Of a stretch of DNA of 64,000 bases, positions 3,453-64,000 are shown in pieces. The notes under the pieces are model-generated. The model was not told the DNA's origin, ran no database searches, and saw only the letters and a list, made by a program, of their open reading frames with translations. Made by a program: the position numbers and the translations under genes. Each line of letters opens with the position of its first letter. Position 1 is the stretch's first letter. Where the stretch lies: contig VJWM01000106.1 of the NCBI GenBank assembly GCA_010909165.1, forward strand, positions 744,001 to 808,000, given 5' to 3'. The stretch is from Anthoceros angustus. Lineage: Eukaryota > Plantae > Anthocerotophyta.

Positions 3453-3572
3453 CGGCTGCACATTGCATCGATGTGTGAAGGTCGTACGTAGACGTGGCGA
3501 TCGTATACCACAGCAAAAGCATGGGGCGTACTCCAGCCCACAGCGGGTACGTACCGACAACAAACCCCCCTA

Positions 3573-19894: not shown

Positions 19895-21547
19895 CCAAGG
19901 GATCGCTACCGTTTGCAGTCTCGATGAATGCCAGAACGCGCCGAGCTTGATAGGTATGTGCGCTTTGTTGCATATATTCCTGTCATCATCTTGAACGCCT
20001 TGTTTAGACCTGACATCAAGTACAAAGTAGAAACAACTGAGCACGAGAACATCCCGACATAAGGAACATAATCACTGGATAGACTTTAATTTTGCTTGAG
20101 CATATTTACATTGATTTTGGCCTGTGAAACCCGACTTCCTGTTTGGTCTTTCGGACTTCAAATCATACTCTGCCCCTGGAAATCCATTGATTCCTCCAGC
20201 GCATTCGTCTGGGAAGGTTGCGAAACACACCAACCAGGAGGTATCATATAATCTTCAATCCAGCCCGTTCCGAAACCTTCCAATGCTGGCTTGCAAATAT
20301 CTACCAGAAATTGCTAATATGCAGGACGTGCTTACCACTAGTTAGTGACTACGAGCCTCTCCTCCATTAGGTAGATAGACACGTCTTTGAATAGGGCTGC
20401 CAAAGCAGGTTCCACGGGTCGTTAGGCCAGCAAAAGCCGCTGGAGCCTTGGAAACAGCAATGTTCCCGATCTACATCCTAGGCTCGAAGAACGGGTGACA
20501 CTTGTATGGATCACCCTCAATGCGTTATGCCTCAATGCGGTGTAGATGCTGCAGTGAAATGGTGTATCTGAGAGTGAAGATAAGGTCTTCCCACTGGTTA
20601 GCGAAATGAGAAGACGTGATATTATAATTCCCATGGCGGATTGCAGCCTTCAAGACTTCAGTCATTGGAGTGCACATTAAATGATGATCGGCAGGAAGGG
20701 ATCCAGACTCTCTATCTTGATGTCTTGTGCATCTGGCTGGAGCGAGGACATGACTGTTGGTGCTGCACATGCCCTAGGGCAACACTACATGCCCGGCATG
20801 ACTCGACAAGGTCCTGATCCACCGAAACAAGCAGGAATGAGAAGCCAAGCCTTGTCTTAGCAGTGAAGCAGTCTCAAAATGACACAAGCTTGGTTTCAAT
20901 TCCGATCTCATGTTCGGACAACAAATCTGAACTCCAACCAGCTTGGCGTCAACAGAACTTCTGTTAGGTGTCCAACAGTCATGTCCACGCTCCAACCAGA
21001 TGGACAAGGCATCTGGAAACGTTTGAAACCCTAACCATGAAAATGGGCAGCGCTAGCGCAACAGCGCCTCACCGTCAGATGCGTTTGAATTGACACTGAG
21101 CAGGATTGATCCAGTCCGTCCTCTGCAACAATACGGCCATGTGCAACGGCTCTTGGGACGGAGGATGTGTGAACCACAACCGATCCTATGACCCTTTAAA
21201 TTGCATCTTCACCGTTGGATGCATCAAAGGCAGGCTGGATGTCGGAGGCAAACCGCTCTCCCTCGGTTCCCCTTCCCGCTCCCGGTCCCTATTAGGCCTG
21301 GACGTACAAGGAGACGTGACTTGTCACTGACCGAGTGGTTGAGCTCTGGACTCAATTGAGCACTGTGCATTAGGAGATGCCATAGCCTCTGTCCCCCAGA
21401 AAGGAGGGCTCCCACCAGTTCCACCGTCGTCATCGTCAACGGACGGAGGTGCCCGAAGAGCAACAACGCCGGGCGAGAACTGGTACTAGCACCGGCATTT
21501 CATCCTGCTGCTCGAGACATCCAGGTGCAGCCCCGCGCCGTACTATA

Positions 21548-22650
21548 TGCAGCGGGCCCGAGTCCGAGCTGCTACCCACATGCCGCGCCCGCTCATTCTC
21601 TGATTAGCCAAGGGATCGCTACCGTTTGCAGTCTCGATGAATGCCAGAACGCGCCGAGCTTGATAGGTATGACCATCTCTGCTGTTTGCAGATGGAAGCA
21701 TTCGACCGGCTGTTGAGTTACGCCATTTATGGCCAACTGACATACAAGAGGGCGATGAAGCGCTGCAGGAAGAAGTACTTCAATGTTGTCCAAGCGCAAC
21801 AGCGTGGCGGAGAGGTAGCCAGGATGACGCTCTTAGGCGCCTGAACGAGCACTGGAACGGAGTATCCGCCCGACTGCGAATGCCAATACTGCATGTATTC
21901 CAGGGATGTAATCCTGCACTCCATGACTCGACAAGGTCCTGATCCACCGAAACAAGCAGGAATGAGAAGCCAAGCCTTGTCTTAGCAGTGAAGCAGTCTC
22001 AAAATGACACAAGCTTGGTTTCAATTCCGATCTCATGTTCGGACAACAAATCTGAACTCCAACCAGCTTGGCGTCAACAGAACTTCTGTTAGGTGTCCAA
22101 CAGTCATGTCCACGCTCCAACCAGCTTGGCGTCAACAGAACTTCTGTTAGGTGTCCAACAGTCATGTCCACGCTCCAACCAGCTTGGCGTCAACAGAACT
22201 TCTGTTAGGTGTCCAACAGTCATGTCCACGCTCCAACCAGATGGACAAGGCATCTGGAAACGTTTGAAACCCTAACCATGAAAATGGGCAGCGCTAGCGC
22301 AACAGCGTGGCGGAGAGGTAGCCAGGGATGACGCTCTTAGGCGCCTGAACGAGCACTGGAACGGAGAGTATCCGCCCGACTGCGAATGCCAATACTGCAT
22401 GTATTCCAGGGATGTAATCCTGCACTCCATGACTCGGAGCTGGAGCAGCGCGTCCGAGGAACTCCACCATCATCTTCAACACATGCAGGTGCCCTTGGAC
22501 CCGGAGGACCGCCAGAGCCAGCACTTTCACGAGCGCGAGATCCTGCGCCAGCAGCTCCTGGACATTCAGAATCATCCTCCGCGCCCGTACTATCTGCAGC
22601 GGGCCCGAGTCCGAGCTGCTACCCATGCCGCGCCCGCTCATTCTCTGATT
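21548..22650 (+). repeat. Mosaic of array fragments including partial exon-2 copies and a 3 x 58-bp repeat (22057-22240)
   Basis: Segments match 19.4-21.1 kb exactly but are joined out of order at 8-11 bp microhomologies. Confidence 0.85.
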
Positions 22651-24143
22651 AGCCAAGGGATCGCTACCGTTTGCAGTCTCGATGAATGCCAGAACGCGCC
22701 GAGCTTGATAGGTATGTGCGCTTTGTTGCATATATTCCTGTCATCATCTTGAACGCCTTGTTTAGACCTGACATCAAGTACAAAGTAGAAACAACTGAGC
22801 ACGAGAACATCCCGACATAAGGAACATAATCACTGGATAGACTTTAATTTTGCTTGAGCATATTTACATTGATTTTGGCCTGTGAAACCCGACTTCCTGT
22901 TTGGTCTTTCGGACTTCAAATCATACTCTGCCCTGGAAATCCATTGATTCCTCCAGCGCATTCGTCTGGGAAGGTTGCGAAACACACCAACCAGGAGGTA
23001 TCATATAATCTTCAATCCAGCCCGTTCCGAAACCTTCCAATGCTGGCTTGCAAATATCTACCAGAAATTGCTAATATGCAGGACGTGCTTACCACTAGTT
23101 AGTGACTACGAGCCACTCTCCCTCCATTAGGTAGATAGACACGTCTTTGAATAGGGCTGCCAAAGCAGGTTCCACGGGTCGTTAGGCCAGCAAAAGCCGC
23201 TGGAGCCTTGGAAACAGCAATGTTCCCCGATCTACATCCTAGGCTCGAAGAACGGGTGACACTTGTATGGATCACCCTCAATGCGTTATGCCTCAATGCG
23301 GTGTAGATGCTGCAGTGAAATGGTGTATCTGAGAGTGAAGATAAGGTCTTCCCCACTGGTTAGCGAAATGAGAAGACGTGATATTATAATTCCCATGGCG
23401 GATTGCAGCCTTCAAGACTTCAGTCATTGGAGTGCACATTAAATGATGATCGGCAGGAAGGGGATCCAGACTCTCTATCTTGATGTCTTGTGCATCTGGC
23501 TGGAGCGAGGACATGACTGTTGGTGCTGCACATGCCCTAGGGCAACACTACATGCCCGGCATGACTCGACAAGGTCCTGATCCACCGAAACAAGCAGGAA
23601 TGAGAAGCCAAGCCTTGTCTTAGCAGTGAAGCAGTCTCAAAAATGACACAAGCTTGGTTTCAATTCCGATCTCATGTTCGGACAACAAATCTGAACTCCA
23701 ACCAGCTTGGCGTCAACAGAACTTCTGTTAGGTGTCCAACAGTCATGTCCACGCTCCAACCAGATGGACAAGGCATCTGGAAACGTTTGAAACCCTAACC
23801 ATGAAAATGGGCAGCGCTAGCGCAACAGCGCCTCACCGTCAGATGCGTTTGAATTGACACTGAGCAGGATTGATCCAGTCCCGTCCTCTGCAACAATACG
23901 GCCATGTGCAACGGCTCTTGGGACGGAGGATGTGTGAACCACAACCGATCCTATGACCCTTTAAATTGCATCTTCACCGTTGGATGCATCAAAGGCAGGC
24001 TGGATGTCGGGAGGCAAACCGCTCTCCCTCGGTTCCCCTTCCCGCTCCCGGTCCCTATTAGGCCTGGACGTACAAGGAGACGTGACTTGTCACTGACCGA
24101 GTGGTTGAGCTCTGGACTCCAATTGAGCACTGTGCATTAGGAG

Positions 24144-24378
24144 ATGCCATAGCCTCTGTCCCCCCAGAAAGGAGGGCTCCCACCAGTTCCACCGTCGTCA
24201 TCGTCAACGGACGGAGGTGCCCGAAGAGCAACAACGCCGGAGCGAGAACTGGTACTAGCACCGGCATTTCATCCTGCTGCTCCGAGACATCCAGGTGCAG
24301 CCCCCGCGCCCGTACTATATGCAGCGGCGCCGAATCCGTGATGCTTCCCGATATCCACGCCGGCAGAGTCCTGACTAG
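24144..24378 (+). pseudogene. Deletion derivative of the orphan array gene (exon-1 head fused to exon-2 tail); a second copy lies at ~21375-21550
   Basis: MP*PLSPQKGGLP matches the paralog N-terminus; LLRDIQVQPPRPYYMQRRRIR matches the paralog C-terminus. Confidence 0.65.
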
Positions 24379-24774
24379 CCAAGAGATTGCTACCTTTTGC
24401 AATCGTTGTATGTTCGATACCCCAGTGAACAGTTGATGTCCCATACGCTTTGATCTGATGCACATACCGGTGACAGTGCAAAGACCTTTTTAAATAGCTA
24501 CAGCGGGCAGGCAATTTGAAATCATCTGCAGCCTTGGATAGAACAATGAAACCTCGATATTCGTCCATGGCTCGAGAAACGGGTGACATTGAAACGCGTT
24601 TTCTGCTTAGGTGTAGTCACGATAAGATGCCGTGAACATCTGTGCCTTCAGGGTGCAGATGAAGGAGCAGGCAGACGAGAAGCACCCTTCGGTGAAGAAT
24701 CTGCTTGATAAGAATTAGCAGCCTTCTGGTCTGCCTTTCTTGATATGATGGCCGCACACAAGTGATCTCCTATG

Positions 24775-46483: not shown

Positions 46484-49400
46484 CTAGCGGCGCGTCCGCG
46501 GCTTACAGCGGAATTCCGCCAGCAATGCTATGTGGTCCGAGGACCACTCTGGAGATGGCAGGGCAGTGTCCTTCCGCAAACTCTCCTCGTCCAGCAGCTC
46601 CAAAACGGAATCCACGGCCAAGGAATCCGCTGCATCACATAACACGCCAAATTTACTTGATTGATTTCATTCTCACAGAAAAGCCAGGCAGGTTATTAGG
46701 GAAGGGAGTGTAGTTTGAGCAAGCCGCCTACCAGTGTAAAAGATGTAGTCGAGGGTCCCCAAAAAGTCTCTGGTACAATTCGTGAAGAGAGGCTCATTAC
46801 TTAATGGCTCCATTCGCCGACGCTGACGCTCTAGTGCAGGAGTCGAACTTCCAAGCCTACAAAGACCTGAATACGCACTAACCTGGAGACAGAATGCGAC
46901 GAGAATGGTATTACAAAACTGCAAACCTCTACTGCGACTCTGCAGACGACCACAGCTTCAACAGGCTTACCAGAGGCAGCGAGTGGCAGAGCTTGCTCGA
47001 AGGACGGAGGATACCAAGCGGATCAGTCTGCAGTTCCGGATGGGTGGGATCTACCCTTCCTGACTTCAGAAGTGAATGTGGAGCACTGCCACCCACAATT
47101 GCAAACCATTCTTGATCAATAGACACGTCCACGCCGAGAGAGTTCTTTGAATCAATAGATGAGTTTCCAACGGCAAATATCAAGTCGCAATGACCACTGA
47201 AGACCAACCTTCCGGGAATCGAGTTGAAGTCACCGGCTACGAGCATCGGTATATCAGCACTCGCTGCGATCTTCTCCAGTCCCTTCAATAGGGTGTGGAC
47301 CTATAATTCATGAGCCCGCAAGGTTTCGAGTTATTCATCAGATGTCACCTGACGAGGTTCACGTCAACAACAGATTACAACACCAAAATGATACCTGCCA
47401 AATCTTCACGTCTTTCAACTCAGGATTCGCATGAATGTGTGTGTTAGCCTGAAAAGAGAGAATTCAACCGTTCGTCTTTAGAAGCTGGACGTCTCTATGC
47501 TGCCTCAGACCTCTTACTAAATCTTTAAGATGAAAACTCTTGAATCGTGCAAGACATATGTAAAAACTCACGAGTCTGTGAACATCACTAAAGCACTGGT
47601 ACTCTTCACCCTGAAGCTAATGATTCGGAGTTATGTCTTACAGCCGTAAACGACTCACCACACAAAGCAGCTGCCTTTTCCCTCCCAAGGAAGGGGAATC
47701 CAGTCCATGCACCGCTTCTTTAGCCTCCAACACCACGATAAGAGCAACATTATCCTGGACACCAAGCGGCACCTAAGTCAGTCTGACCCAACTGTGGGTT
47801 TAGGATTGATCCACGACCATCGACAATGAAATGTTTTCATTTTCTTAAATACACCTAACTAACCTTGAGCAATCGACTAAGAGCTGCCTTCTTGGATGCA
47901 CTGGGCACAAGTGCATCTGACAGCGACTGTGCAGCCTTGTTGAATTCCACCTGCATCACCACAGAAACCGGGTTACCCGACTGCTCACAACATGAATGGA
48001 ATCAAACAACCTTGTCCCAAATGAAAGACATCAGAGTACTACCTCTGCCCTTTTAGAATCACCAAAGAGTACCTCATATTTCTTTACAAGCTGAAACCGA
48101 TCACGTTTGTAGAAAGTGGCACAACCATCAATGATGTAGGAAGAGCCTACAAAAACCTGGAGGCCAGCATAATGAGCTCATTAGTCCAATAAGAGGAGTC
48201 CTCACACGCACGTTGGCTTTGATAAGATACTCATACAGAATCAAGGTATTCCAAGATACCTCTGAAGTCTTCTTCTTGTACACAGCATTGTAACCATGCT
48301 TGTCCAACTCTGGGCAAAAAAAGTCTTGGAAGTGATTACTCTGGACCTGCACCAACAAGAGAACAGAAAGACTTAGCTCAAAGACTGGTCTGCAACCACA
48401 GGGATTCACACCAACCATCGTAGACACTGCAAGCACACTTCTTACCTCCTGAAGGCACAAAATATCAGCTCGGTAACCAATTATCTCCCGCAGCAGATTC
48501 TGCCTGCGATATGCCCAAGAAAGAGCCCATGGAGGACAGTAACTGTACATCTCACTGGTGGCATAGATATCGGACAAAACATTGTAAGATAGAACTGTAA
48601 AGGTCCCGGGTAGTCCACCCCGTGGCTCCACGTCAGCTCCTACTGCAGTACCATCTGCTCCTGGATTGACATAAACCATGCGCCGTGGGGTAGGAGACGG
48701 AGCCGGGATAACCCGAGCAGTGAGTACGGCGTGGGCAGGAGCAGGTGCTATTCCAGTCAGTTTGTCCACGGCTGCGCACTCCAATTTAAGAACATAGCCG
48801 ACATCCTCAGCTGTGGGTGTATATGTTTTACCCTGCCCCACCTCAAACCACGTTTCCCCATTGCCACCCTGTTCAGAGGCAAAGCGAGAGCCATTACTAA
48901 GCACAATAGGAGGTGGTCCAGTGGTGATGCTGCCACCCGTGCTGTTGAACCTGCCATAGGGGTTATCCTCCTCCTCCCCGTTCTCCCGTGCTGCGGTGGC
49001 AGCACGTTCGTGCATAGTCCGGTGATGCCTCCATGCATCCGCGAAGCATTTAGTGCTGCAGTGGTAACTTTTGCTCACTGCCAGCTTCAACTTGACACAC
49101 GACAAACATTGCACCGTCGCTTGCTCTGCAGGATGCACACTGCACACCGCCCCCCTTTTGTCGCTCTGTATCCTGTACCTGCACAGGTTAGACCCGCAAC
49201 ATCCGTCCCGTCAGAACGTCCCTTACCACACCCCACTAGGGTACGAGTTTGAGGCTACAATTTCCTAGGAGGCAGCAGCAGCAGCAGCAGCAGCTAGGTC
49301 GGAGCGCGGAAAAGGCGCTCGACAGACGGGCCGACAGACAAGGGGAGCGCTAATCTCGAAACAAGGGGGCCAAAAACGCACCATCGACAACGCAGGTAGT

Positions 49401-49539
49401 GACCATCGACGGGAGCGGACTCGGAAATGTCATCGGTTGTGACAGTACCGTCCGATTTGCGCAGTAGCACATAGGGAGTGAGCTCGCAACCGGCAATGGG
49501 AATGTCGGATGGCAAATGCACCCGAAGCACGCTCAGCAT
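46484..49539 (-). CDS. CCR4: Carbon catabolite repressor 4 homolog (plant CCR4a/b-type poly(A) deadenylase, EEP fold), multi-exon
   Basis: MLSVLRVHLPSDIPIAGCELTPYVLLR, CSVHPAEQATVQCLSC..SYHCSTKCF, TFTVLSYNVLSDIYA..ADILCLQEV, LVAGDFNSIPG, GTLDYIFYT, PSPEWSSDHIALLAEFRCKPRTRR*. Confidence 0.97.
49271..49295. repeat. (CAG)n microsatellite in CCR4 intron 1
   Basis: GGCAGCAGCAGCAGCAGCAGCAGCT read directly. Confidence 0.8.
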
Positions 49540-51025
49540 GCTTTCCCCCTCCACGAACACACAGTTTGGCCGGTTCCTGCAGCAATTGGGCCGGCGCACC
49601 TAGGCTTGTAAACGCACAGAGCATTAGCAAAACCGCGAGGCGGATCCGCCATCAGATGCTCCCGCGCCCCGCCAGCCTTGCGCCCCTCTCAGTCCCCGCC
49701 TACCTGGACAGAAAAAACCTCCGCCCTACCCCCTCCCTAAACCTCCCTTCCGCACCACTGCTCCAGCGCCGGCCTTCTCCTCCCCTGCCTCGGTCATAGC
49801 CAAGTCAACCAATCCCCGATGTCTGCATGCGCAGCACCACCCCAGCCGCTGGCCTGCTACCGAAACCTCTTCTCTACCACCTCCATCCCCTCCCGACCGG
49901 GCCAACCCCGAAACTCCGCCCCGCCAGCCGCTGCATAGGCATAATCCTCCGCAGCTCCCCCGCTCCCTTTACCCTACCCTACCCTAGCCAAGCCCGCCCG
50001 GCATCTCCTCGACTCCGCGCCACTCCACCTAATTCCTCCGAACTGCACCCCGCCGGAGTCAGGAGCTCCGCCGGAATGCGGAAGCCGCCTCCAGGCACAG
50101 CAGCAACCGTAGCAACGGCAGCAGCAGCATTTCCAACCACAAGCTACAGGAATGCAGCCAGGCCACACAGCACAGCACAACACACCAACCTGCAAAGAAC
50201 CAGCCACTGCCGGCCGCCGCCGCCGTCCTCAATTCCCCGCACTTCCTCCGGCTGCTGCAGCGGGCGGGAGGCGAGCAAGCGCGGCAATCCCCGGCGGAAG
50301 GGGCAGGGCCTCCGGTGCGGCCCTCCTCCCAAACAGCTGCACAGCGCAGAGCGGAGCAGAAGCGAGCAGCGTGTGCAGCGGAGGAGGCAGAGATAGAGAT
50401 GGCGCCGGCAGCGCTCAAACGGAGCGAGGAAGGCGCGATGGCGGGAAGATACAGAGGAAGGCGCTCCTGCGCGAGTACCAACCCTCAAGATCGCGCTCTA
50501 GCGTGGATGCGAAAAAAAGCACAAGGGAGCAGAAGCTTTGGTGTTGTTGGCTTGGCTCGCGCCAGGGCCAGGAGGGGCCCAGTCACTGAGAGAGAAGAGA
50601 GCGACAAGCGACCAAGCCTCTACAAATCCCTCTACCATCCTATATTAGCACGCTGGATATTTTCCACTAACGCCTGGTATACCATCACCGCCCTCTCATC
50701 ACCCCGGCCCAACCCAGCCACCCAGCCGTGGTCTATCACTCATCAGCCACAGAACCAGCTCACGTACCCAGTCCAACAACGTCAGTATTGATCTCCTATT
50801 CAAACGCTCTTCCTAACAACGGTATCTTGTATATCAAATCATATAGGTACTTTAATATTTAACTTATTTTTTCTAAGAAAACAATATTTTATCATTAAAT
50901 ATACATACTGTGATTCATAATAATCTAAATTAGATATTAATCTCAGTGTGTACATAACTATAAAAAATGCTAATCTTATTATCTAGAAATATACATGTAA
51001 TACCAATCTCACCATAAAGCCGACC

Positions 51026-51049
51026 TCCGATGTACATATGTACATCGGA
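51026..51049. repeat. Perfect 24-bp palindrome TCCGATGTACATATGTACATCGGA
   Basis: The sequence equals its own reverse complement. Confidence 0.95.
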
Positions 51050-52381
51050 ACTCTTGGGTCTTGGTGTAAGATAATAAGTGCATTAAATGGTGACAAGGCC
51101 ACCCGTGTGACATCCGGCCACTTTCAATCACATTACGTATGATCGTAACTGTAATAAGTGTCAGTCTCATTATCTGAACGTATACACGTATGGCGACTCA
51201 CATGTTGAGAATCCTCATTGTTGTTTTGTTTTTTAGTGTCTTTTGTTTGTTTATGTGCTAACGACTGCCAGAGGGCATAGATTTTGTGATTGAAATGCTT
51301 GTTTGTGTGTGAAAGTGTCAACAAAGGGCGTTATAGAGTCCTAGGAAAGTTTAGACATGAGGTGTATGAGCTTGAATCTAACATATACTTAGCCTATTGT
51401 AAGGCGGAATTACGAAGCTGCCAAGAGGGCTGTAATGATATGGGCACGTGGCGGTAGGTGGAATGTGTGTCTTCATCCCTTTCTTTATCACCTTTATAAT
51501 TGCATGGGGAATTGACCTTTCTACCATTGGCTGGTAAATTAAGTACATAGTATGAAATCGACACAACATGCGCAGAGGGAAACCAGCGGGAATCTGGGCC
51601 GGGTGTAATGGTTTCCAAGATGGTTTTCTTAAGAGTTTGCTTGTTAGTGGGGACTAGGCAGTACACTGTTAACAGCGTCTGGGTAGAAAGGGGTTTCTCC
51701 AGTAACCCCTTCTTGCACATGTCTAGGGATGGACCCCTTTTTGCGCCATGCAAAATCCGAACACAAATTGGCTAGTATGTAGCAAACCCTCGTGTTTTTC
51801 CTATAACGAAGAAGCAGTTGCGGACACATAATGTGTGTTATTGAAATGTACAGCACAAATGACAGCATGAAACCATAGTCCACCTTGTGGACTTGTGTAT
51901 ATCAGGAAAAATATTACAGTTCGTGCGCAAACATGTGCGCGCCCTGCCTCTACCTGCCAATGCCTGATTTATGTTCACATTCTCAATCAGGTTACTCCTC
52001 AAACGTTTGTGTTTCTGATCTCGGGACAATAATGTCATCGTTGATAGACTGTAGGCGGGGATCGTGAACCGCAAGATTTTGATCTGTTGGGTTTGCCCTA
52101 TAAATCCGCCCATGCCAAACGCTCGTAAATCCGAATGTCCCAAGTGGGATCCTTCACCGCTGCTTGCTCATCGACTCGCTTCTTCGGTGTTTCTGATCCT
52201 TTCGTTGTTGCTTTCTCCTTTTTCTTCTGTGGTCCCTGGGATTGACTCAAATCCTGAAGATCGATGGGAGCGGAAGTGCCATGAGTTAAATGAAGAAACG
52301 ACGCTCTCGACTTGATAGACCTTCCGCCTGCTAACTCCTTTGCGAAAAAAACCGGATGCCCTCGCTTATGTGGTTTGGTTG

Positions 52382-53075
52382 TCAGTTCTTCCTCATCACT
52401 GGGGAAAACCTCATGCCTGTTATCCGTTGATCAATGAAAATGGTGCTTCTTTGCTCACAGTCGATGGCGATGCAATTGCGGCCTTCCAATAATCGCCAAT
52501 ATACCGCCGCTCCGAGCACCCATCTATTACCCACTCCCTCTCTCCGTGAAAAGGTCATAAGCGAACCATAAGCCCTATTGGTTTACGGTAAGGGTTTACA
52601 ACATGTCCATCGTTTGACACATTCAAAAGTTTCTTCACGACGGCGCTGTGTCTAATGAAAGCGGGCATGGCTCAATCTCGATGCATGTTGCACAGACCGC
52701 ATTTCATATCTTCGACGGTAGGGTGGACACCATACCCTACTGTAAAATATTCGCAATTCTCATATAGACCTTCATCTGCAATCAAATTATCTTTCTCCCA
52801 CACCATGGTATACACACCCCCGCGCACACCATTTACGCAGCGCATTCCGAACGTCCTGCATCTGATCTGGACCATGCATAAATACCACTCGAAAGGTTTT
52901 GCAGACCGTTACTGTCATGAACCCATCCATGATTTTTTCATAATCTTCGGATGTCATCTCCTGATCCCAGGATTCTGATACATTCCCTCTTGGCAAATCA
53001 ACAACCAGCAGTTTGTATTCCCGCTTTCCAAGATAGCCGGCCATTTCGCGAATATCACCGAATTACTTGGTACCG
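52382..53075 (-). CDS. Beta-class N4-cytosine/N6-adenine DNA methyltransferase-like domain (N6_N4_Mtase fold); frameshifted as assembled
   Basis: In order: K(V)IIGDIREM..YKLLVVDLPRG..WD (motif III-IV, 52999-52988), VWEKDN (52803-52786), CEYFTVGY, NPYRKPIGLMVR (motif X, from 52596), GEWVIDGCSG (motif I region, ~52533-52510), LEGRNCIAID (motif II), RI. Confidence 0.8.
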
Positions 53076-54830
53076 ACTTTTCTGTTTGCTTTTGGGACTT
53101 GGAACGTGGATAGTTTAGCATCATTGTCCTCCTCTGCTAATTCTCTCTGAAGGTCTTCCACCCTCTTCCAGTTCCTTGCTGCGTTGATATGCTCTTTGAA
53201 GCTATCTGGAATGACTTTTTCTTTGTACTCTTCTGCCTGCTTCAAAGTCTGCGAGTACCAAAAAAGCATTGTGAAATTTGACGTTGATGGGGGATGCGCA
53301 AACAAGTGCGCGCACCCTAATCCACAGTACCCGATAGCAACGAGAATAACTTACGATGTGGTCGAAAACCGGTTGAAACTTTGCGATATCATCCGCCGAG
53401 TGCCGTGGGTACTCTCTCTCAACCTCTCGCAAATGACGACACCGTAAACCCGAATGTAAAGTCGTTTGTATCACATTTAACTTTTTTGCCTTTATGATCC
53501 ACGTCTTCATGCCGCTCACGCTTAACTCTCCCTGAATTACTTTCTCCGGTCGAGAGCATAATCCGTTCGCCTCTCCGAGGCATTCTCGAACACCCGCCAT
53601 TTGCATGCATTGGCTTTACAATAAGATTCGGATCTCGCTGGTTCAGTTCGAGCCACGCTTGATTTCCTCTTTTGCTGCCTTTCCGCCTAGCTCGCCTTTC
53701 TCCCAAAGGTCGAATACTTCATCCACCCTATCCCGGACATGCGCCGGAGACTGCAATGCAGCATACGGTCAGTCTACCAACCGTGCATATCTTCACGGTC
53801 GCGGCATCCGATCACGCCGAGCATCCTGCATGATTGTATTTCCAGTCCATAGTAATGTTAACGCCATCCGCCGCAATCTTCATCTCATCATGGATGTATC
53901 GAACTTGCTCGATGAAGGACATCCGCTTTCCAAGATAGCCGCCATTTCGCGAATATCACCGATAATTACTTGGTACCGACTTTTCTGTTTGCTTTTGGGA
54001 CTTGGAACGTGGATAGTTTAGCATCATTGTCCTCCTCTGCTAATTCTCTCAAGGTCTTCCACCCTCTTCCGGTTCCTTCTTTGCGTTGATATGCTCTTTG
54101 AAGCTATCTGGAATGACTTTTCTTTGTACTCTTCCTTCAAAAGTGCGAGTACCAAAAAAGCATTGTGAAACTTGACGTTGATGGGGGATGCGCAAACAAG
54201 TGCGCGCACCCTAATCCACAGTACCCGATAGCAACGAGAATAACTTACGATGTGGTCGAAGACCGGTTGAAACTTTGCGATATCATCCGCCGTCGAGTGC
54301 CGTGGGTACTCTCTCTCAACCTCGCAAATGACGTACACCGTAAACCTGAACAGAAAGCTGTTTGTATCACATTTAACTTTTTTGCCTTTATGATCCACGT
54401 CTTCATGCCGCTCACGCTTAACTCTCCCTGAATTACTTTCTCCAGTGCTGATAGCATAATACGTTCGCCTCTCCGAGGCATTCTCGAACACCCGATTCGT
54501 CGCATGCATTGGCTTTACAATAAGATTCGGATCTCGCCCGTTCGTTCGGGCGCCACGTTTGATTTCCTCTTTGCCTTTTTGCGGTTTCCGCTCCTAGCTC
54601 GCCTTTCTCCCAAAGGTCGAATACTTCATCCACCCTATCCCGGACATGCGCCGGAGACTACAATGCTGAGCAGTTTTGGTCTACCACGCATATCTTCACA
54701 CGCGGCATCCCGATCACGCCGAGCATCCTGCATGATTGTATTTCCAGTCCATAGTAATGTTAACGCCATCCGCAATCTTCATCTCATCATGGATGTATCG
54801 AACTTGCTCGATGAAGGACATCCGCTTCAA
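53021..54830. repeat. ~900-bp tandem duplication inside the ParB/MTase gene
   Basis: CCGCTTTCCAAGATAGCC at 53021 and ~53923; junction microhomology CCGCTT also at ~54823. Confidence 0.9.
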
Positions 54831-57800
54831 ATCGGCCTTTACATTGTGATCCGTTGCCAAACATCTCATCTCGGCTTGCGTCAACCCGGCATAGATATGG
54901 GCTTCCATATATTGGTAGTGCGAATTCTCCGGGTCCTCGGCATATAGTCTCTGGAAAGCATAGAAGCTGTGATTTCCTCCTAACACTCCCATAGTGTATT
55001 GTTGTTTCTTCACTTATCCTTATCGTAGTCGTCGACTGTTGGGCACTCTCTTGGGTCTATCATACAAAGGAGGGGAAGTACTCCTTCTTGCACTGGTCCC
55101 TTTTTTATTTCTCGGAGAAGATGTTTTCCCCAAGACTCATCTACTCTTCTGATTTGAGCATCTCGGGTTAAATAATCAGCGCTTCTCAATTTGGTGATGG
55201 CAACCATGTCCGTGTGAGGGATGCATCTCTTCTTGTGTGCTGACTCCCGGATTTGGTTGAGAGGATCCTGCTCACCGCGCTCCACTCTATCTTGTCCGTC
55301 ATCAACGCTTTTGTAATCACCGCCTGCTGCGGACTATTGTCCTCGTCCATGCGTAGCCCTCTTCACGCTTTTGCCCTTGCCTTTCTTTTCACGAGTCTCG
55401 AACAATTTCAAGATCCTCCTCTGTCCTCCTTCTTGCACCGGTCCCTTTTTATTTCTCGGAGAAGATGTTTTCCCCAAGACTCATCTACTCTTGATTTGAG
55501 CATCTCGGGTTAAATAATCAGCTTCATTTGGTGATGGCAACCATGTCCGTGTGAGGGATGCATCTCTTCTTGTGTGTCGACTCCGATTTGGTTGAGAGGA
55601 TCCTCTCACTGCCTCCACTCTATCGCTGTCTGTCATCACGCTTTTGTAATCACTCGCCCGATTGCGGACTATTGTCCTCGGTATCGTAGCCCTCTTCACG
55701 CTTTTGCCCTTGCCTTTTTCACAGTAGTCTCGAACAATTTCAAGATCCTCCTCTGTCCTCGTCTTGCCTGCTCGGCCTTTCTTCCGCCTTCTTCTCTTTC
55801 GACGATATATCCCTTTGCTCTTTCGCCGGATACCGGATGTTTTCTAGACTCTTCAATATTTGTTCACCGATGGCAAAACAACTGATTTTTGGATGCATTT
55901 GAGGACCGTTTGGATAGTCCCTCACTTTGGGTCTCCTCATTCCTATTCATCTCGCTTGGGCGTTCAAACCCACGGCTTCAACATCCGCCTCCTCATCATC
56001 CCCCTCTTCGCGATCCCCACTATCTGCTTCATCCTCAAGCTCTCTATCCAGTGGCGCTTCATACCTTTCGGTATCTTGGTCCATGGAGTCTTCGTCGATA
56101 GTTCTTCCTCCATAGCAGACGGCGGCTTAGCAGATGTTGCAAATTGTGCCTTCCTTCCGCCTTCTCCACAATAGGTTGACCACCCACGCTTCCGGCCATC
56201 TTTGTCATAATTAAGCCAACTACGATCTCTTTGCGGAGAAACGCGGCACAAACGCGTCTGTGAAGAAAAACCAAGAGGATTACCATCCGCCGCAAAAATT
56301 GAACAATGGAAGACAAGCACAAGCACCGTGGCGGTGTGCGCGCACATGAGCGCGCACTTGTCGGCTCAGGCATGAGGCGCGCACGCGCACCATGGGCCTG
56401 CATGTGCCAAGGAGGGGTGCGCACGCGCGCACCAGGCGATGGCGGATGGCGGGCGCACTTGTGCGCGCCGGGAGGCGGGATGGCGGTGCGCGCACTTGTG
56501 CGCGCACCAAGCGCCCCGGGAAGGCGGGATGGCGGGTGCGCGCACTTGTGCGCGCACTTGTGCGCGCACTTGTGCGCGCGTGCGCGCACTTGTGCGCGCC
56601 GGAGGCGGGATGGCGGTGGGGGCGGGAGGTGGGGGCGGTGCGCACTTGTCGCGCCGCCGGCATGGAGGGCCTTTGGTGCACAAGAGCGTCGAGGCGGCCT
56701 ATCCTTCAAACCACTCGGTTAGAAGAAAAACCAAGAGGATTACCATCCGCCGCAAAAATTGAACAATGGAAGACAACACAAGCACCGGCCGGCGCGCACA
56801 TGAGCGCAAGATTTGTCGGCTCAGTAAGGCGCGTGGCCGCGCGCGCACATGGGCCTGCATGTGCCAAGGAGGGAGGCGGTGCGCGCGCACCATGGGCCCC
56901 GGAGGCGGGATGGCGGTGCGCGCGTGCGCGCGTGCGCGCACCGGAGGCGGGATGGCGGTGCGCGCACTTGTGCGCGCACCCGCCCATGCGGGGGTGGGGA
57001 GGCTGCGCACTTGTGCGCGCACCCAGCCAGCGGTGCGCGCGGCGCGCACCATGGGCCCCGGAGGCGGGATGGTGGGGAGGTGGGGGCGGTGCGCGCGCCC
57101 GTCACCAAGATAGGGGGCCTTTGGTGCACAAGAGCGTCGAGGCGGCCTATCCTTCAAACCACTCAGGTTAGAACTGAAAACATAGAATTAAGCTCACCTT
57201 GTCTAGTGTAAGAGCAACGTCAAGTCCTGTCCTCAGGTCCGGTGTGTTGCTGCGTCTCGCAATCAACTTGTCCGCGCTCAAGACAAGCATCCGATGACAA
57301 TTAGAAGTCTTCATGTAAAACTTCTCTTTCATAGTGCAGATCAAAAGCTTCACTCACATTTGATCGACTTGACTTCAAGCCCATAGAATGTAGCCCACCA
57401 CTATCTTCGTGTGTCTTCAACACGTCCATGTATCCATTGACCCATAACTGGATTGGATCAAAGTTGGCTGAGTGGAATCAATACCTTCTTCATGGATGCA
57501 CCATTCCTTATCAAGTAGACCTGTGAAGATGCGCATATCTCCTTCAAGGCGGTCCTTTCTCGAGGTGAAAGGGTTCTCGGCGTAGTGCGGAACAATGCCT
57601 AATTCGTCAAACAATGTCCGGGTACTATCTTGACTAACCCGGATGCTCCCTTCCCTCTTCTTCCTTTGAAGCCCCTTGGGACGCTCCACTCTTCCTTGGG
57701 AGTGCCCATGGCATGAGCCCATGTGCAACTTGGCCTTGGGTTTCACCACCTGTGCCATCACCCCCTGCCTTCCCGTTCCTCCAGCCCTTGCCTCGGCACA

Positions 57801-57878
57801 TGCATCGTTTCGCTTCGCTTGGAGGGAGGTTGAGGAGGATGGTCCACTACGTTGGCGTTTCACGGACTTTTCTCCCAC
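53076..57878 (-). CDS. N-terminal and middle part of the methyltransferase gene: upstream exon, acidic tract, ParB/Srx-like domain and helical linker; disrupted by indels and duplications as assembled
   Basis: Phase-0 splice LTLDK|GTGAGC (57197)..TTCACAG|TRLC (56257). DAQIRRVDESWGKHLLREIKKGPVQEGVLPLLCMID..MGVLGGNHSFYAFQRL..YQYMEAHIYAGLTQAEMRCLATDHN (LGGNHS at 54983-54966). The linker runs into the MTase at ~53070. Confidence 0.6.
55081..55770. repeat. ~345-bp tandem duplication
   Basis: CTCCTTCTTGCAC.GGTCCC..ATTTCTCGGAGAAGATG at ~55081 and ~55425. Confidence 0.85.
56263..57165. repeat. GC-rich minisatellite region (GTGCGCGCACTTGT units) in a putative intron, itself duplicated with a ~460-bp period
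   Basis: AAGAAAAACCAAGAGGATTACC at 56263 and 56723; arrays of GCGCGCACTTGT. Confidence 0.9.
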
Positions 57879-58129
57879 TACTTGACATATCTGGAATCAA
57901 AAACACGCAGGAATGAAAATCGGCCACATGTTAGCAACTGTCTGTAGAGAATACAATTTAAGGGGCACCAACCTGCTATTTCACAATTCTCGAGAAGGTG
58001 GGTGATGATTCTTGCAGAATCCTGCGAGAACACACGTTTCAGACCCTCTCGATGGAGAGCCTCCGCCCTGTTTCCTGCAAATCACCATAACATTTCAATT
58101 GTATTAGATTATGAACGACGGATCGTTCG

Positions 58130-59130
58130 GCATGCCCTTAGGCGCGCTTGTGGAAGCCCGAGGGCACGCCCTTCGGAGGAACATGTGGGCATGTCCGGCG
58201 CCATTGGGCGCCCTTGAGCACGACCCACGCCTGAGCACGCCTGGCGCCCGGCGCCCCACGCCATGGCGCGCCCGCTGGGCGCCAGGCACGCCATGGCCAC
58301 GCCTGCGGCGCGCCCCACCCTGGCACGCCGCGGCGCCTGTGGCCACACGCCGCCCATGGCCAGTGGGCACCCACGGGCCCTGGGCGCCATGGCGGCCCTG
58401 GGCGCCATGGCGCCCTGGGCGCCCACGGCGCCCTGGGCGCCCCACGGCGCCCTGGGCGCCACGGCGCCTGGCGCGCCACGCCTGGCGCCACGGCCAGCCC
58501 TGGGCGCCCATAGCCATGGCCCTGGCCCCGCCTTGGGCGCCCAGGCGCCTTGGCGCCATGGCAGCCCTGGGCGCGCCCATGGCACCCCTAGCCGGCGCCA
58601 TGGCGGCCCTGGGCACGCCCGGGCGCGCCGGCAGCCGCGCCATGGCGTGCCCAGGCGCCCAGGCGCCATGGCGCCCATGGCAGCCCTTGGGCGCCCAGGC
58701 GCGCCATGGCGGCCCGAGCCCGGGCGCCAGCCCCATGGCGTGCCCGAGGGCACGCCATGGGCCCATGCGCCGCGGCGCGCCATGGCCACGCCTGCATGGC
58801 AGCCCTGGCGCGCCATGGCTGGCCAGGGCGCGCCATGGCTGTGCCTTGGCGCGCTGGCACGCCTGGGCGCGCCTGGCACGCCTGGGCACGCCATGGCTGT
58901 GCCTGGGCGCCTGGGCACCCTTGGGCGCGCTGGCTGGCCTTGGGCGCGCCTCCGAGATCTGAGAGCCATGGCGCCTCCGAGATCTGTGAGGCTCACCGAG
59001 ATCTGAGGCGCCGGCTCCACTCCCCAACACCTAACTGACGCTCTCCTTGCCCGCCTCCAATCGCAAATCCCAAATCCGGATGCACGGTGATATAAGATCG
59101 AGATCTGAGAGCCATGGCGCGCCAAGGGCC
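58130..59130. repeat. Extremely GC-rich low-complexity spacer built from GGCGCC / GCCATGGC / CCCTGGGC units
   Basis: Read directly; lies between the divergent genes; GAGATCTG repeats at its right end and a telo-box AAACCCTAA at 59140-59148. Confidence 0.85.
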
Positions 59131-59430
59131 CTTTGGAGTAAACCCTAAAACGGGCTCTTCCTGCTTTTTGGGTGCACTGCTAATATGGAACCATGGTTAA
59201 TTAACTAGGCTTGAACCACTTGTTTAACCAAGGGTTAAGTAACTGGGTTTACTATACTTTGCGGCTGGGTTGCCGCTATGAGAGTTTATTTTGTGGGTCA
59301 TTATCATGTCCAACCATGAAGTCCCCTAATTTGAACGCTCGGATTACGGGGCCACTATCCTTTTCACATTCTCCTCTCATACCGTGTGGGCACCTTCATC
59401 TAGCATACAAAGAATGCAGCCCTCAAACAT

Positions 59431-62400
59431 ATGGCAAAATCGGGGGGGAAGCGGCATGGCATTCGGTTGCGGGCGACGCGGAATGTAGAAGACAGTTGTA
59501 GGAGCGGTTTCAAATCGCCTCGGGAGAGTGGGCATCGAGACATCGCGCACAGGTTCGCTGTTATGGATACGACGCCTGATGCTTCTATTCCAAAACGGGT
59601 AATGGTCATGGATACGACTCCATTAGAGAATGACGGAAGTTCTTCTTTCCCAAGGCCTAATCTTTTGATGCACCCTAACAAGGAAGTGGCTGACGTGGAT
59701 CTCGCAGAGAAGATGCTCTCGACGGCGCCGGCTATTCTACGATGCGATGACGAAGACGCTTCCATTGCTCCATCCAAGATTGCGACATCATTGACGGTGG
59801 TTTTGGAGGACTTGAGCAAACTTCAATCCCAAAGCTTTGTTTGAGACTTTCGTGCGAGCCAGCCCTCAAAAACGTCGGAATATCCCAGCAGACGGTGGAA
59901 GCGTGCGCAAAGGTTGTGTTCTACCGAGTTCGAGTGCATGGTCGTCGCATTGTTGTAGCAAAGGGTGTTTGCTGAAAGTTGGAAGGAAACATATAGAAAA
60001 CCTCAGGTATCGCTTCTTGGGAATGGGTCGAGAGCAACAGGAACTGTATTTGGAAAGTCTGCTTGAGGCAGTCCAAGTCGATCTCCACACAACAAAGGTG
60101 ATCAACTACCTTTCCGGAGACCGGAGAACGCAATGTTGTGTTCGAAGTTTTCGCAAGGTGTTCTGCATTGGATGGAGACGGTATCACGATCGTGAGCAGG
60201 TTCTCCGAACACACCATGGTCATCGAATGAAGGTCCAAGCCCGTCCAAAGCAAGACCATGTGCTAGAATGCATTGCTTGGATGGACCAATTTTTAAGGTA
60301 ATCGCGGAGCGCATGCCAAATGTTGCGGTGTTCAACCCTCCTATATCAAGGCGAGATCTTCCAAGACTACAAACGGAGGTGGCACGGGGATGTCAAACGA
60401 TCTCACTCTCATTTTGCGCATTATGGAAGATGCACTTCCCAAATGTCAAGATCCCCAAAGTGCGCCGCTTTTCCAAATGTGTGAAAGTGAAACTATCAAG
60501 ACGGCCATCGGGACATGATCGACGAGACCAAGGTAGGTCCAAGTGCGGCGCGCGCAAGTGCGCGCAAGTGCGCGCGACTTGCGCAAGTGCGCGCGCAAGT
60601 GCGCGCGCAAGTGCGCGCGCAAGTGCGCGCGCAAGTGCGCGCGCAAGTGCGCGCAAGTGCGCGCGCGCGCGCAAGTCTTGGCGCGCAAGTGCGCGCGACT
60701 TGCGCAAGTGCGCGCGCAAGTGCGCGCGCAAGCGCGCTTGATCGCCCCGCCTGCGCGACTTGTGCGCCAAGACAGCCAATGCGCGCCTCCTTGCAGTGGA
60801 GCCCTATCACACGCACTTATTCTCCGCTATGCAATATACGAATCTCACATCTTCATGGTTTCTTTGGCGTAACGCTTTGAGAGCGAATCGCGGTCGACAA
60901 GTTCGCTTAAAACAAGAGCGATCAAGCTTAGCGGCATCGGCTGAAGTGGACAACCCAAATATATTGGAATTGCTATAGATGGTATGGACGAGCAAGACCG
61001 AGCTCCGCACTTCAGGGGCCTCCAAAAGATTTCCGATGGGTTAATTCGTGTTCATGTTGTTGGTTGTTTGGTATACAATAATGTGATGAAGACGAAGGTG
61101 TATGTCAACTATCCGAACATCCGCAATGATGCCAACTCGACGATACATATTATTCAAGATATTATACTCAACTATGACGGTGTCTTGCCAAAGACCTTTA
61201 CCTTCAATTGGACAACACCGCGAGAGAACAAGAATATGCCGTTGTTTGCATATCCGAGTATGTTGGTGAAGAAGCGGGTATTCGAGAAGGTTAAAGTTGG
61301 ATTCCTTCTTGTCGGGCACACCCATGATTGATGGATCAAATGTTCTCTTGTTTTTCAAAAGTCTAAGACATAAGAAGGCAATGTCGCTACCAACTCGATG
61401 ACGCTTATTGAACAAGCGTATACCCCAAATCCAGTGAAAGTGATTACCGGTGTTATGGATTCAAGGTATGTATGGCCTTGGTATGGGCAAAAGGGGGCAC
61501 GGATGCTGCTTGGACGTTGAACAACCATAGTTATCAACATCAATTTAAAATCACGAGGAAGAACGCAGCGGGGCCATGGTTGTAGTGCTTGGCAAATATT
61601 TATCAACCACACCTCACCGGGAACCCGACGAGGGACTTGAGTTTCTTCGCCTCATCCCGAAACCCCCATCTGGGGCACCTGCAGCACTACAAGTACATGG
61701 GAAAGCTCCGGATCCCAACCCTCATAGATCATTGGATGGCATCGGAAGGCACTCAAGAGCCGATGCGAAGTACCTTACCAAAGGCCGACAAGATATGGTG
61801 GAACGGCTTTTGGGAGTCATGCGCTGATTTGTAAAAATCTCCAAAGGGGCGCCGACCATGAGCTAGAGATACCATGGCGGTACAATCGGGTAGAGGCCGA
61901 AAATAGCGATACCATCCTTGTGCGGATGTTCTGCTTCTCTCGGGTCCAGTAGCAAGGAACGTAGGGCCAAGGCAGATGTACCTTGGTAATTATATCCCGA
62001 AGGCAGCAAGGGCAAGGGAAAGTGCACGGTTCGACGGAGATGTGACTGAGATCCAGCGTGGCCATATGATTGCCGTTGCATGTGAGGCGGATGACCAAAA
62101 CAGGCCTTTTTGGGTTGCAGAGGTGGAGAACCTAGATTTCGACTGTGACGAACCGTACCTGGTCGTGCAATGGTGGGTTACGGAGAACAGTAATGCATTT
62201 GAAGGCCGATATATACCCGAAGAGATTTTGCCACAATCAGTGGACAAGAATGCTCTACGTCAAAGGCGGAAGCGTCCGAAGCATCTCGATTGCCTTGTGG
62301 TGGCGGAGACCTTTATTCTTTCATATGGGTTTGCCCTGACGCGAGAGAGCACGCTTTATGTGAGAACCCAAGAGCTCATAAAGACCAAGCTATTTGAACT

Positions 62401-62483
62401 CCACCATATGCAAATCGGGAAGCTGGGAATAAGGACAACGGCTCAGCCCACCACCTTGAGGCGCGAGGAGAAACGTTTCACCA
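59431..62483 (+). CDS. Sola-like DDD transposase (DUF7869-type core) with an N-terminal Cys-rich region and a C-terminal beta-rich domain; frameshifted as assembled
   Basis: HCCSKGCL..CCVRSFRKVFCI, LWKMHFPNVKIPK.SRFSKC..C, KYIGIAIDGMD..KT.LPHF (D at 60978), FYLQLDNT.RENKN (D at 61211), FLLVGHTHD..DQMFS (D at ~61334), HQFKITR, RPFWVAEV..YLVVQWW. Confidence 0.8.
60533..60796 (+). repeat. (GCAAGTGCGCGC)n minisatellite forming a putative GT-AG intron in the transposase; second copy at 62825-63070
   Basis: CAAG|GTAGGT..CTCCTTGCAG|TG; splicing keeps the frame into RVRLKQERSS in the second copy. Confidence 0.8.
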
Positions 62484-64000
62484 CACACCATGGTCATCGA
62501 ATGAAGGTCCAAGCCCGTCCAAAGCAAGACCATGTGCTAGAATGCATTGCTTGGATGGACCAATTTTTAAGATAATGCGGCGCATGCCAAATGTTGCGGT
62601 GTTCAACCTGCCTGACTCCTATACGAAGGGCGAGATCTTCCAAGACTACAAACGGGAGGTGGCACGGGCAGGGATGTCAAACGTATCTCACTCTCATTTT
62701 TGCGCATTATGGAAGATGCACTTCCCAAATGTCAAGATCCCCAAGTGCAGCCGCTTTTCCAAATGTGTACAGTGTGAAACTATCAAGACGGCCATTCAGA
62801 TTACGACAGATCGACGAGACCAAGGTAGGTCCAAGTGCGCGCGCAAGTGCGCGCGCAAGTGCGCGCGCAAGTGCGCGCGCAAGTGCGCGCGCAAGTGCGC
62901 GCGCGCGCAAGTGCGCGCGCAAGTGCGCGCGCAAGTGCGCGCGCAAGTGCGCGCGCAAGTGCGGCGCGCGCAAGTGCGCGCGCAAGTGCGGCGCGCGCAA
63001 GTGCGCGCGCAAGTGCGCGCGCAAGTGCGCGCGCAAGTGCGCGCGCAAGTGCGCGCGCGCCTCCTTGCAGTGGAGCCCTATCTGCACTTATTCTCCGCTA
63101 TGCAATATCTGAATCTCACATCTTCATGGTTTCTTTGGCGTAACGCTTTGAGAGCGAATCTGCGGTCACGAGTTCGCTTAAAACAAGAGCGATCAAGCTA
63201 AGCATCGGCTGAAGTCGCGGACAACCCAAATATATTGGAATTGCTATAGATGGTATGGACGAGCAAGACCGAGCTCCGCACTTCAGGGGCCTCCAAAAGA
63301 TTTCGCCGATGGGTTAATTCGTGTTCATGTTGTTGGTTGTTTGGTATACAATAATGTGATGAAGACGAAGGTGTATGTCAACTATCCGAACATCCGCAAT
63401 GATGCCAACCTGACGATACATATTATTCAAGATATTATACTCAACTATGACGGTGTCTTGCCAAAGACCTTTACCTTCAATTGGACAACACCGCGAGAGA
63501 ACAAGAATATGCCGTTGTTTGCATATCCGAGTATGTTGGTGAAGAAGCGGGTATTCGAGAAGGTTAAAGTTGGATTCCTTCTTGTCGGGCACACCCATGA
63601 TTGATGGATCAAATGTTCTCTTGTTTTTCAAAAGTCTAAGACATAAGAAGGCAATGTCGCTACCAACTCGATGACGCTTATTGAACAAGCGTATACCCCA
63701 AATCCAGTGAAAGTGATTACCGGTGTTATGGATTCAAGGTATGTATGGCCTTGGTATGGGCAAAAGGGGGCACGGATGCTTGGACGCTTGAACAACCATA
63801 GTTATCAACATCAATTTAAAATCACGAGGAAGAACGCAGCGGGGCCATGGTTGTAGTGCCGCGGCAAATATTTATCAACCACACCTCACGGGAACCCGAC
63901 GAGGGACTTGAGTTTCTTCGCCTCATCCCGAAACCCCATCTGGGGCACCTCTGTGCACTACAAGTACATGGGAAAGCTCCATCCCAACCCTCATAGATCA
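62484..64000 (+). repeat. Tandem duplicate of the transposase segment starting at ~60208 (period ~2.28 kb), running off the window
   Basis: ACACACCATGGTCATCGAATGAAGG at ~60208 and ~62484; downstream sequence is collinear through the DDD motifs. Confidence 0.9.

Follow-up and report, generated by a model that had tools for sequence, protein, structure and literature searches.

A decayed transposon of probable Sola1 type pairing a transposase with a divergent ParB-like/methyltransferase gene in the land plant Anthoceros angustus

We analyzed a 64,000-nucleotide stretch of the Anthoceros angustus genome (GenBank assembly GCA_010909165.1, contig VJWM01000106.1, positions 744,001 to 808,000 of the forward strand), hereafter the window. 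The region from roughly 51 kb onward very probably corresponds to a decayed copy of a Sola1-type cut-and-paste DNA transposon composed of two genes, a DUF7869 DDD transposase and a divergently oriented accessory gene encoding a ParB-like domain and a DNA methyltransferase-like domain. The element's identity and the linkage of its two genes are what this high confidence refers to; what the accessory protein does is a separate matter, taken up below. The copy in the window is a dead pseudogene fossil without function, since both genes contain frameshifts, stop codons, and internal tandem duplications.

The accessory gene can be read in the minus-strand frames between 52.4 and 55.3 kb, which together yield a frameshifted gene in which a ParB-like segment and then a linker precede the motifs of a beta-class amino-methyltransferase in their proper order. 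Its two recognizable domains are the following:

52385..53062, minus strand: beta-class (N6_N4) amino-methyltransferase-like domain, pseudogene
54717..55333, minus strand: probable ParB-like N-terminal domain, split by one frameshift into the pieces 55333-55013 and 55013-54717

The first of the methyltransferase motifs is VIIGDIRE at about position 53960, which recurs as FGDIRE at 53062 in a tandem twin. After GDIRE, the minus strand encodes, in this order, LLVVDLPRGNVSESWD, VWEK, EYF, NPYRKPIGLMVRL, GEREWVIDGCS, and LEGRNCIAID. The domain changes frame near 52836-52790 and again near 52537-52513 and contains two in-frame stops, and GEREWVIDGCS is cut by a frameshift ahead of the expected GSG.

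Intact relatives were used to classify this domain, all of which, including contigs L001-L004 and L007, derive from one Logan assembly, SRR33208241. A phmmer search with a 91-residue piece of the window (52790-53062) identified five true relatives (P0006 and P0008-P0011), and a sixth, P0013, came from a word-indexed protein search. The five top phmmer matches (P0001-P0005) were rejected as compositional, being bacterial SprB/FlgD-Ig repeat proteins in which a 30-residue stretch was matched repeatedly. Word-indexed searches with P0009, with the ParB-like open reading frame (ORF) of contig L003, and with the family alignment brought no additions other than P0013, P0014, and the contig from which P0011 comes; the protein results contained no named eukaryotic relative and no protein from Ectocarpus. 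Beyond SRR33208241, the accessory-gene family was not found among 5.8 billion clustered proteins, a rarity that is probably due to transposon genes being seldom annotated. The relationship of the window to these proteins is clear, with the P0009 methyltransferase finding the window by tblastn at E = 6.9e-17 and the methyltransferase pieces of the window aligning to intact relatives at E values of 1e-11 to 1e-17.

It is established that the C-terminal domain has a beta-class DNA amino-methyltransferase fold. P0006, P0009, and P0010 score 50.1, 30, and 47.3 bits, respectively, against PF01555, all above the gathering cut-off of 26.7, and a profile of the family matches, in the Protein Data Bank (PDB), RsrI (3e-8), TTHA0409, M.BceJIV, MboIIA, DpnA, the rotifer enzyme N4CMT, and CcrM. 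An AlphaFold model of an intact relative, with a predicted template modeling score (pTM) of 0.66 and a predicted local distance difference test (pLDDT) value of 80-90 in the core, retrieves by Foldseek CcrM (1.5e-12) and M1.HpyAVI (2.7e-11), followed by MboIIA, M.BceJIV, RsrI, rotifer N4CMT, and PvuII. The beta-class motif order is common to the window and all relatives, which read DLPRG, W.K, (S/N)PY(Q/R)KP, DGCSGSG, and RNV(I/V)AVD. Moreover, residues 23-263 of P0010 align by tblastn to phage DNA methylases, with a best E value of 4e-9.

As for the N-terminal domain, a ParB-like identity is probable, to judge from its language-model neighbors, one sub-threshold PHROG match, and a published Ectocarpus protein described below. 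That the domain belongs to the family is apparent from the L003 ParB-like ORF (3375-4841), which matches window positions 55001-54741 at E 5.7e-17 and 44% identity by tblastn, and from L001 and P0014, which carry the same domain. The language-model neighbors of the L003 core domain (3975-4430) are fungal DUF3723 proteins (0.95-0.97) and ParB_N clusters (0.91-0.93), and the predicted structures of the top neighbors superpose on ParB_N proteins with template modeling scores of 0.58-0.65. The PHROG match links the piece at 54717-55013 to PHROG 6392, "ParB-like partition protein," at E 0.093. The L003 domain, P0014, and the window pieces were all without a match in NCBIfam. The window encodes VLGGNHS, with LGGNHS at about position 54990 on the minus strand, and the family motif is VLGGNHS(W/F). 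Set against the ParB consensus, as known in general, this motif has the Gly and the His and is missing the arginine of the GERRxR box. That arginine is used in ParB for CTP (cytidine triphosphate) binding. Phage ParB-methyltransferase fusions were also sought for a ParB profile, and the four phage loci examined carry plain methylases without ParB_N.

The transposase lies head to head with the accessory gene, on the plus strand, and comprises the following parts:

59816..62572, plus strand: DUF7869 DDD transposase pseudogene, of Sola1 type by its motifs
59816-60532, plus strand: N-terminal CCxxxC region
60533-60796, plus strand: putative GT..AG intron with an array of the repeat GCGCGCGCAAGT
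60945-61582, plus strand: catalytic core
61907-62572, plus strand: C-terminal region
62483..64000, plus strand: tandem duplicate of 60209-61731, 92% identical and with the same frameshifts, which runs off the window end

Pfam DUF7869 matches the window pieces at 60945-61328 (1.7e-20) and 63182-63601 (4.5e-21), which are twins, and matches the transposase of L003 at 1.7e-49. By tblastn, the latter protein gives E = 2e-39 against the window, with values of 2e-33 and 1.5e-26 for the copy at 59816..62572. The motifs IAIDGMDEQ, LQLDNTA/RENKN, and GHTHD/LMDQMF (a stop following GHTHD) are each present twice because of the duplication and can be read only across frameshifts. As both twins share the frameshifts inside LQLDNTA/RENKN and at the GHTHD/LMDQMF junction, the gene was dead before it was duplicated.

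These motifs are also those of a transposon described in the brown alga Ectocarpus, Sola1-1_Ec32. The blocks of its published transposase are MMDGANQ, VQVDNTVAENKN, and MVGHTHIQIDQIFS, to which correspond MDQKK, VQMDNTAAQNKN, and VGHTHDQIDQMFS in L003 and IDGMDEQ, LQLDNTA/RENKN, and GHTHD/LMDQMF in the window; VQxDNTxAxNKN and MVGHTHxQIDQxFS are common to the transposase here and the curated Sola1-1_Ec32. By these signature motifs the transposase is classified as Sola1, in a comparison made at the level of motifs and not by computed alignment. In the supplement table of PMC12477816, the best match of the Sola1-1_Ec32 transposase is a moss Repbase entry, Sola1-1_PPa, and Sola1 itself was therefore already known in land plants.

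That the two genes form one element is supported by two contigs with no nucleotide similarity to the window. In L003 (9.1 kb), a DUF7869 gene at 56-1915 on the minus strand (a 619-residue ORF) faces plus-strand ORFs for a ParB-like domain (3375-4841), a linker, and a methyltransferase (5635-6752). L007 (16 kb) has the N-terminal exons of the transposase at 251-1666 on the minus strand, facing a ParB-methyltransferase gene at 2956-6379, the remainder of the transposase lying past the contig end. All parts have diverged from L003 in parallel, at 44-50% identity for the transposase, 44% for the ParB-like domain, 45% for the linker, and 30-40% for the methyltransferase. The same layout together with parallel divergence points to long-term linkage of the two genes and, as read from these sequences, the head-to-head pair on two unrelated contigs (~45% protein identity) is a stable feature of the lineage. 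The idea that the genes are unrelated neighbors, a methyltransferase pseudogene having come to lie by chance beside a Sola-like element, draws on the window offering a single locus in which the pair is not bracketed by terminal repeats. It is contradicted by the recurrence of the same divergent pair in L003 and L007 with parallel protein divergence, and by the pair being the published structure of Ectocarpus Sola1-1, and we regard it as extremely improbable.

An earlier note, made from the letters of the window, had proposed much of this. Its minus-strand series of methyltransferase and ParB-like motifs is found by translation, complete and in the order given, across frameshifts, as are the head-to-head transposase motifs on the plus strand, where the two DUF7869 matches fall. 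The N6_N4_Mtase identity that it assigned is borne out by relatives that pass PF01555 and by the AlphaFold model with its matches to CcrM and other amino-methyltransferases, the Sola-like label by the signature motifs of curated Sola1-1_Ec32, and the union of the two genes in one element by the L003 and L007 pairs. Its ParB/Srx-like segment stands in part: the segment with LGGNHS is there and has fitting language-model neighbors, whereas Pfam, PDB sequences, and structure modeling all fail to back it. The self-marking with 4mC or 6mA that the note envisaged would be the work of a domain whose motif IV, DLPRG, lacks the aromatic residue.

Contig L007 also carries an Ulp1-type Peptidase_C48 gene (11918-12892, minus strand, 5.5e-45) and a RecQ-like helicase fragment (15394-15961, plus strand). 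Both lie 5-9 kb downstream of the ParB-methyltransferase gene and may be extra cargo of a large element or mere neighbors.

Several observations weigh against the reading of the region as a Sola1-type element with a ParB-like/methyltransferase gene. On their own, the methyltransferase and ParB pieces of the window match no Pfam family, and the family assignment therefore rests on the intact relatives. These all come from a single Logan run, and that they belong to a species other than that of the window is deduced from the missing nucleotide similarity. For the window copy, neither terminal inverted repeats nor a target-site duplication was found; the inverted-repeat search of the window returned minisatellite self-matches only, and the right end lies beyond position 64000. 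The Sola1 assignment consists of motifs shared with a published supplement, without a computed alignment. For the ParB-like domain, neither the window pieces nor the L003 ORF matches Pfam PF02195 (ParB_N) at E values up to 1, and PDB sequences match neither that ORF nor the profile of this domain; the model of a relative's ParB-like domain is unusable (pLDDT 50, pTM 0.39), and Foldseek finds nothing for it below E 2. Finally, the canonical motif IV, (D/N/S)PP(Y/F/W/H), is not matched, and the aromatic residue that defines active amino-methyltransferases is gone.

This last point bears directly on catalysis. Motif IV is DLPRG in all seven eukaryotic members, that is, the window and its six relatives, which were compared with two phage enzymes, the methylases of Pseudomonas phage HU1 and Ralstonia phage RS-CA1. 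DLPRG aligns opposite DLPYG in the phage enzymes, and the GD, W.K, QKP, CxGSG, and RN motifs are invariant between the two groups. Since the two phage relatives also have the Leu, it is a trait of the parental phage-type subfamily. Judging from this alignment, the sole unusual change in motif IV is Tyr to Arg at the predicted base-stacking position, and its conservation across members argues that it is not decay. In characterized amino-methyltransferases, the Tyr, Phe, or Trp of motif IV, (D/N/S)PP(Y/F/W), stacks on the flipped base.

One explanation, which challenges catalysis only and leaves the identity of the element untouched, is that the methyltransferase-like domain of the family is a pseudoenzyme, a DNA-binding or regulatory module that kept the fold and S-adenosylmethionine binding and lost transfer. 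Arginine throughout the seven eukaryotic sequences, where the two aligned phage relatives have tyrosine, would fit such a loss, as the residue that normally stacks on the flipped base has been replaced. On the other hand, motif I (GCSGSG), QKP, W.K, and the motif IV Asp are invariant with active-type phage enzymes, the ORFs remain intact at 35-50% identity, a constraint unusual for a dead active site, and arginine, too, is able to stack on bases. We therefore rate a pseudoenzyme as a serious possibility, somewhat short of an even chance.

In the mechanism that we propose, the ParB-like domain would bring the accessory protein to the element's own DNA. There, the methyltransferase domain, which keeps motif I, QKP, and the motif IV Asp, would bind S-adenosylmethionine and would either methylate an exocyclic amino group or, with the cofactor bound, regulate transposition or silencing as a DNA-binding protein. 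Should it methylate, adenine N6 would be the likelier target because motif IV has an Asp, the top structural matches are N6-adenine enzymes, and the phage relatives are annotated as adenine methylases. Our most far-reaching reading, offered tentatively and in our view unlikely to hold in full, is that of a land-plant Sola1 lineage with a long-constrained accessory protein bearing the Tyr-to-Arg change, of which intact copies elsewhere in this genome would be active. They would place N6-methyladenine (6mA), N4-methylcytosine (4mC), or an unexpected mark on their own DNA through ParB-like targeting, or would encode a new cofactor-dependent transposon regulator. Were active copies to exist, this would be the first transposon-borne amino-methyltransferase system in land plants. 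A transposon that brings its own enzyme for binding and modifying DNA could mark itself, adjust its transposition, or interfere with host silencing. A recurrent land-plant family would widen the known host range and offer a tractable setting for bacterial-type amino-methylation on plant transposons, and a motif IV Tyr-to-Arg change kept across deeply diverged members poses a concrete, testable biochemical question.

The remaining features of the element are its left edge, several repeats, and two coding stretches that could belong to the accessory gene:

50945..51050, no strand: approximate left edge of the repeated element, where unique DNA changes to repeated DNA
53021..54827, minus strand: tandem duplication of ~905 bp in two copies (53021-53928 and 53923-54827), 91% identical by self-BLAST
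55078..55767, minus strand: tandem duplication of ~345 bp in two copies, 90% identical, in a basic region upstream of the ParB-like domain
55950..56126, minus strand: acidic stretch DEDSMDQD...EEGDDEEADVE, a probable upstream exon of the accessory gene
56262..57173, no strand: two tandem units of ~460 bp, 79-80% identical, with 12-nt arrays on the 10-bp palindrome GTGCGCGCAC
57420..57896, minus strand: 159-codon ORF that may be the accessory gene's first exon, an uncertain assignment
58100..59040, no strand: GC-rich minisatellites that repeat every 9 to 64 nt, between the two divergent genes

The left edge is placed by a short-read DNA contig from the same organism that spans 49302-50944 unbroken and stops there, only short variant-rich contigs being found beyond. 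Neither the acidic stretch nor the 159-codon ORF has a counterpart in L003 or L007, and the latter matches no Pfam family. The 905-bp duplicated block runs from the last part of the ParB-like domain through the linker into the first part of the methyltransferase domain; translation shows identical linker blocks twice in 53021..54827, and the L003 linker ORF matches both copies. Parts of both genes were tandemly duplicated later by the host genome. The GC content reaches 0.62 at 58-60 kb.

Local tandem segmental duplications are unusually abundant across the window, both inside and outside the transposon, with units of 0.35-2.3 kb and 79-98% identity. The duplicated blocks are 3697-7040, 14368-18808, 19537-24401, 53021-54827, 55078-55767, 56262-57173, and 60209-64000.

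The palindromic arrays are confined to the element. The window contains 13 copies of the palindrome GTGCGCGCAC where 0.06 would be expected, all of them within 53.3-57.0 kb, and the 28 copies of its variant GCGCGCGCAAGT all fall in putative GT..AG introns of the transposase, neither unit being present elsewhere in the 64 kb; the 12-nt arrays extend over 56336-57022, 60533-60796, and 62825-63070. The arrays might be bound by a protein or might simply be a minisatellite particular to this lineage. The more specific proposal, that the GTGCGCGCAC arrays at 56.3-57.0 kb and the GCGCGCGCAAGT intron arrays are candidate parS-like sites for the element's own ParB-like domain, would account for this enrichment inside the element, and red-algal Plavaka elements have been reported with tandem inverted-repeat arrays beside ParB-domain accessory genes. 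Since L003 and L007 lack such arrays and GC-rich minisatellites are common in the same part of the window, we consider parS-like sites improbable.

No sequencing run was listed for 52.3-55.4 kb. Signs of expression were not seen, as neither gene is covered by an RNA contig in the runs found via a neighboring host gene, and the element is covered by fragmentary DNA contigs only. The short-read contigs from the same organism that cover the element are short variant pieces, and word depth is high in the transposase core, as expected for a repeat.

Most of the single-base differences between the window and these contigs, compared over 49001-55000 and 58001-64000, are G>A or C>T, the pattern to be expected if methylated cytosines of silenced repeats had been deaminated.

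Three other genes or gene fragments were noted in the window. An intronless gene for a PLS-class pentatricopeptide repeat protein of 1217 residues, with a C-terminal E motif, lies at 24775-28428 on the minus strand, its internal 312-bp periodicity producing a tandem-repeat signal. At 47800-50518, also on the minus strand, is a CCR4-like gene whose product combines a MYND-type zinc finger with an endonuclease/exonuclease/phosphatase domain; an RNA contig of this gene, from which 49177-49379 and 50043-50189 are spliced out, ends at 50518, ~0.5 kb short of the transposon edge. Within a tandemly duplicated block, 6720-7433 on the minus strand holds part of a CACTA/En-Spm type transposase (Pfam Transposase_21, 1.1e-10). 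The PLS-class gene and the spliced CCR4-like gene indicate a land-plant nuclear genome.

This context also speaks to whether the ParB-methyltransferase gene could be a domesticated host gene like Marchantia DN4MT1, or bacterial or phage contamination of the assembly, as might be supposed from its closest characterized relatives being phage and bacterial enzymes. Contamination conflicts with one assembled stretch joining the element to the PLS-class and spliced CCR4-like genes and with variant copies in short-read contigs from the same organism. A functional host gene would not be expected to have two frameshifts and two stops in its methyltransferase domain plus an internal duplication, and DN4MT1 has TSPPY instead of DLPRG. 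Both origins are highly implausible, and we retain the interpretation of the gene as part of a decayed transposon. It was also on the TSPPY motif that we dropped the link to DN4MT1 made in the earlier note. That note had considered the combination of a Sola-like transposase with a ParB-methyltransferase gene possibly novel, a claim that falls with the publication of the same combination for Ectocarpus; a full-text literature search returned no report of a ParB-methyltransferase module in land plants.

Ectocarpus Sola1-1_Ec32 (Dinatale et al. 2025, Genome Biol, PMC12477816) is the closest known system. It is a 21.5-kb element that has terminal inverted repeats of 282 bp and a target-site duplication of 4 bp, and it encodes, on the strand opposite to the transposase, a 1104-residue accessory protein with a ParB-like and an N4C/N6A methyltransferase domain, predicted to produce 4mC/6mA; the same paper cites earlier reports of such genes for green and red algal transposons. 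Like the element described here, it couples a Sola1 transposase, of which VQVDNTVAENKN and MVGHTHIQIDQIFS match the window and L003, with an opposite-strand ParB-like/methyltransferase gene. The differences are that Sola1-1_Ec32 is intact and resides in a brown alga, whereas the window copy is broken, has a land-plant host, and has its ends out of sight.

For the methyltransferase domain taken by itself, the phage HU1 and RS-CA1 enzymes are similar over the full domain (24-27% identity), with GD, DLP.G..WD, W.K, QKP, CxGSG, and RN in common. They keep the Tyr, are ~240-260 residues long, and have no ParB-like extension, in contrast to the transposon proteins with their Arg and long N-terminal regions. 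Marchantia DN4MT1 and bdelloid rotifer N4CMT share the PF01555-type fold, and the N4CMT structure matches our model at E 1e-9, no closer than bacterial N6-adenine enzymes. Unlike the family, DN4MT1 has the canonical TSPPY motif, which the paper on it reports together with its being a host gene, and both DN4MT1 and N4CMT are host genes, not transposon cargo. Land plants have few N6-adenine methyltransferases, according to a review of eukaryotic adenine methylases.

The ParB-like domain has its nearest named language-model neighbor in fungal DUF3723, which is likewise encoded by an accessory gene of a large mobile element, being a conserved accessory gene of the Starship giant transposons of fungi. 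It differs in that there is no match to the PF12520 profile, the transposons are of the tyrosine recombinase class, and no methyltransferase is fused to it. This resemblance hints, as a lead only, at related DNA-binding accessory domains in giant eukaryotic transposons that are themselves unrelated. Red-algal Plavaka elements provide a further parallel in PAG2 and PAG3 (Petroll et al. 2025), accessory proteins that, like the one here, have a ParB-like or N6-adenine methylase domain plus a nucleic-acid or chromatin modifying activity. They belong to another superfamily, and their ParB-like domain is fused to a 2OG-dioxygenase and their methylase to a SET domain. Against this background, the architecture of the element was already published for Ectocarpus (PMC12477816), and what is new is the land-plant host and the conserved DLPRG motif.

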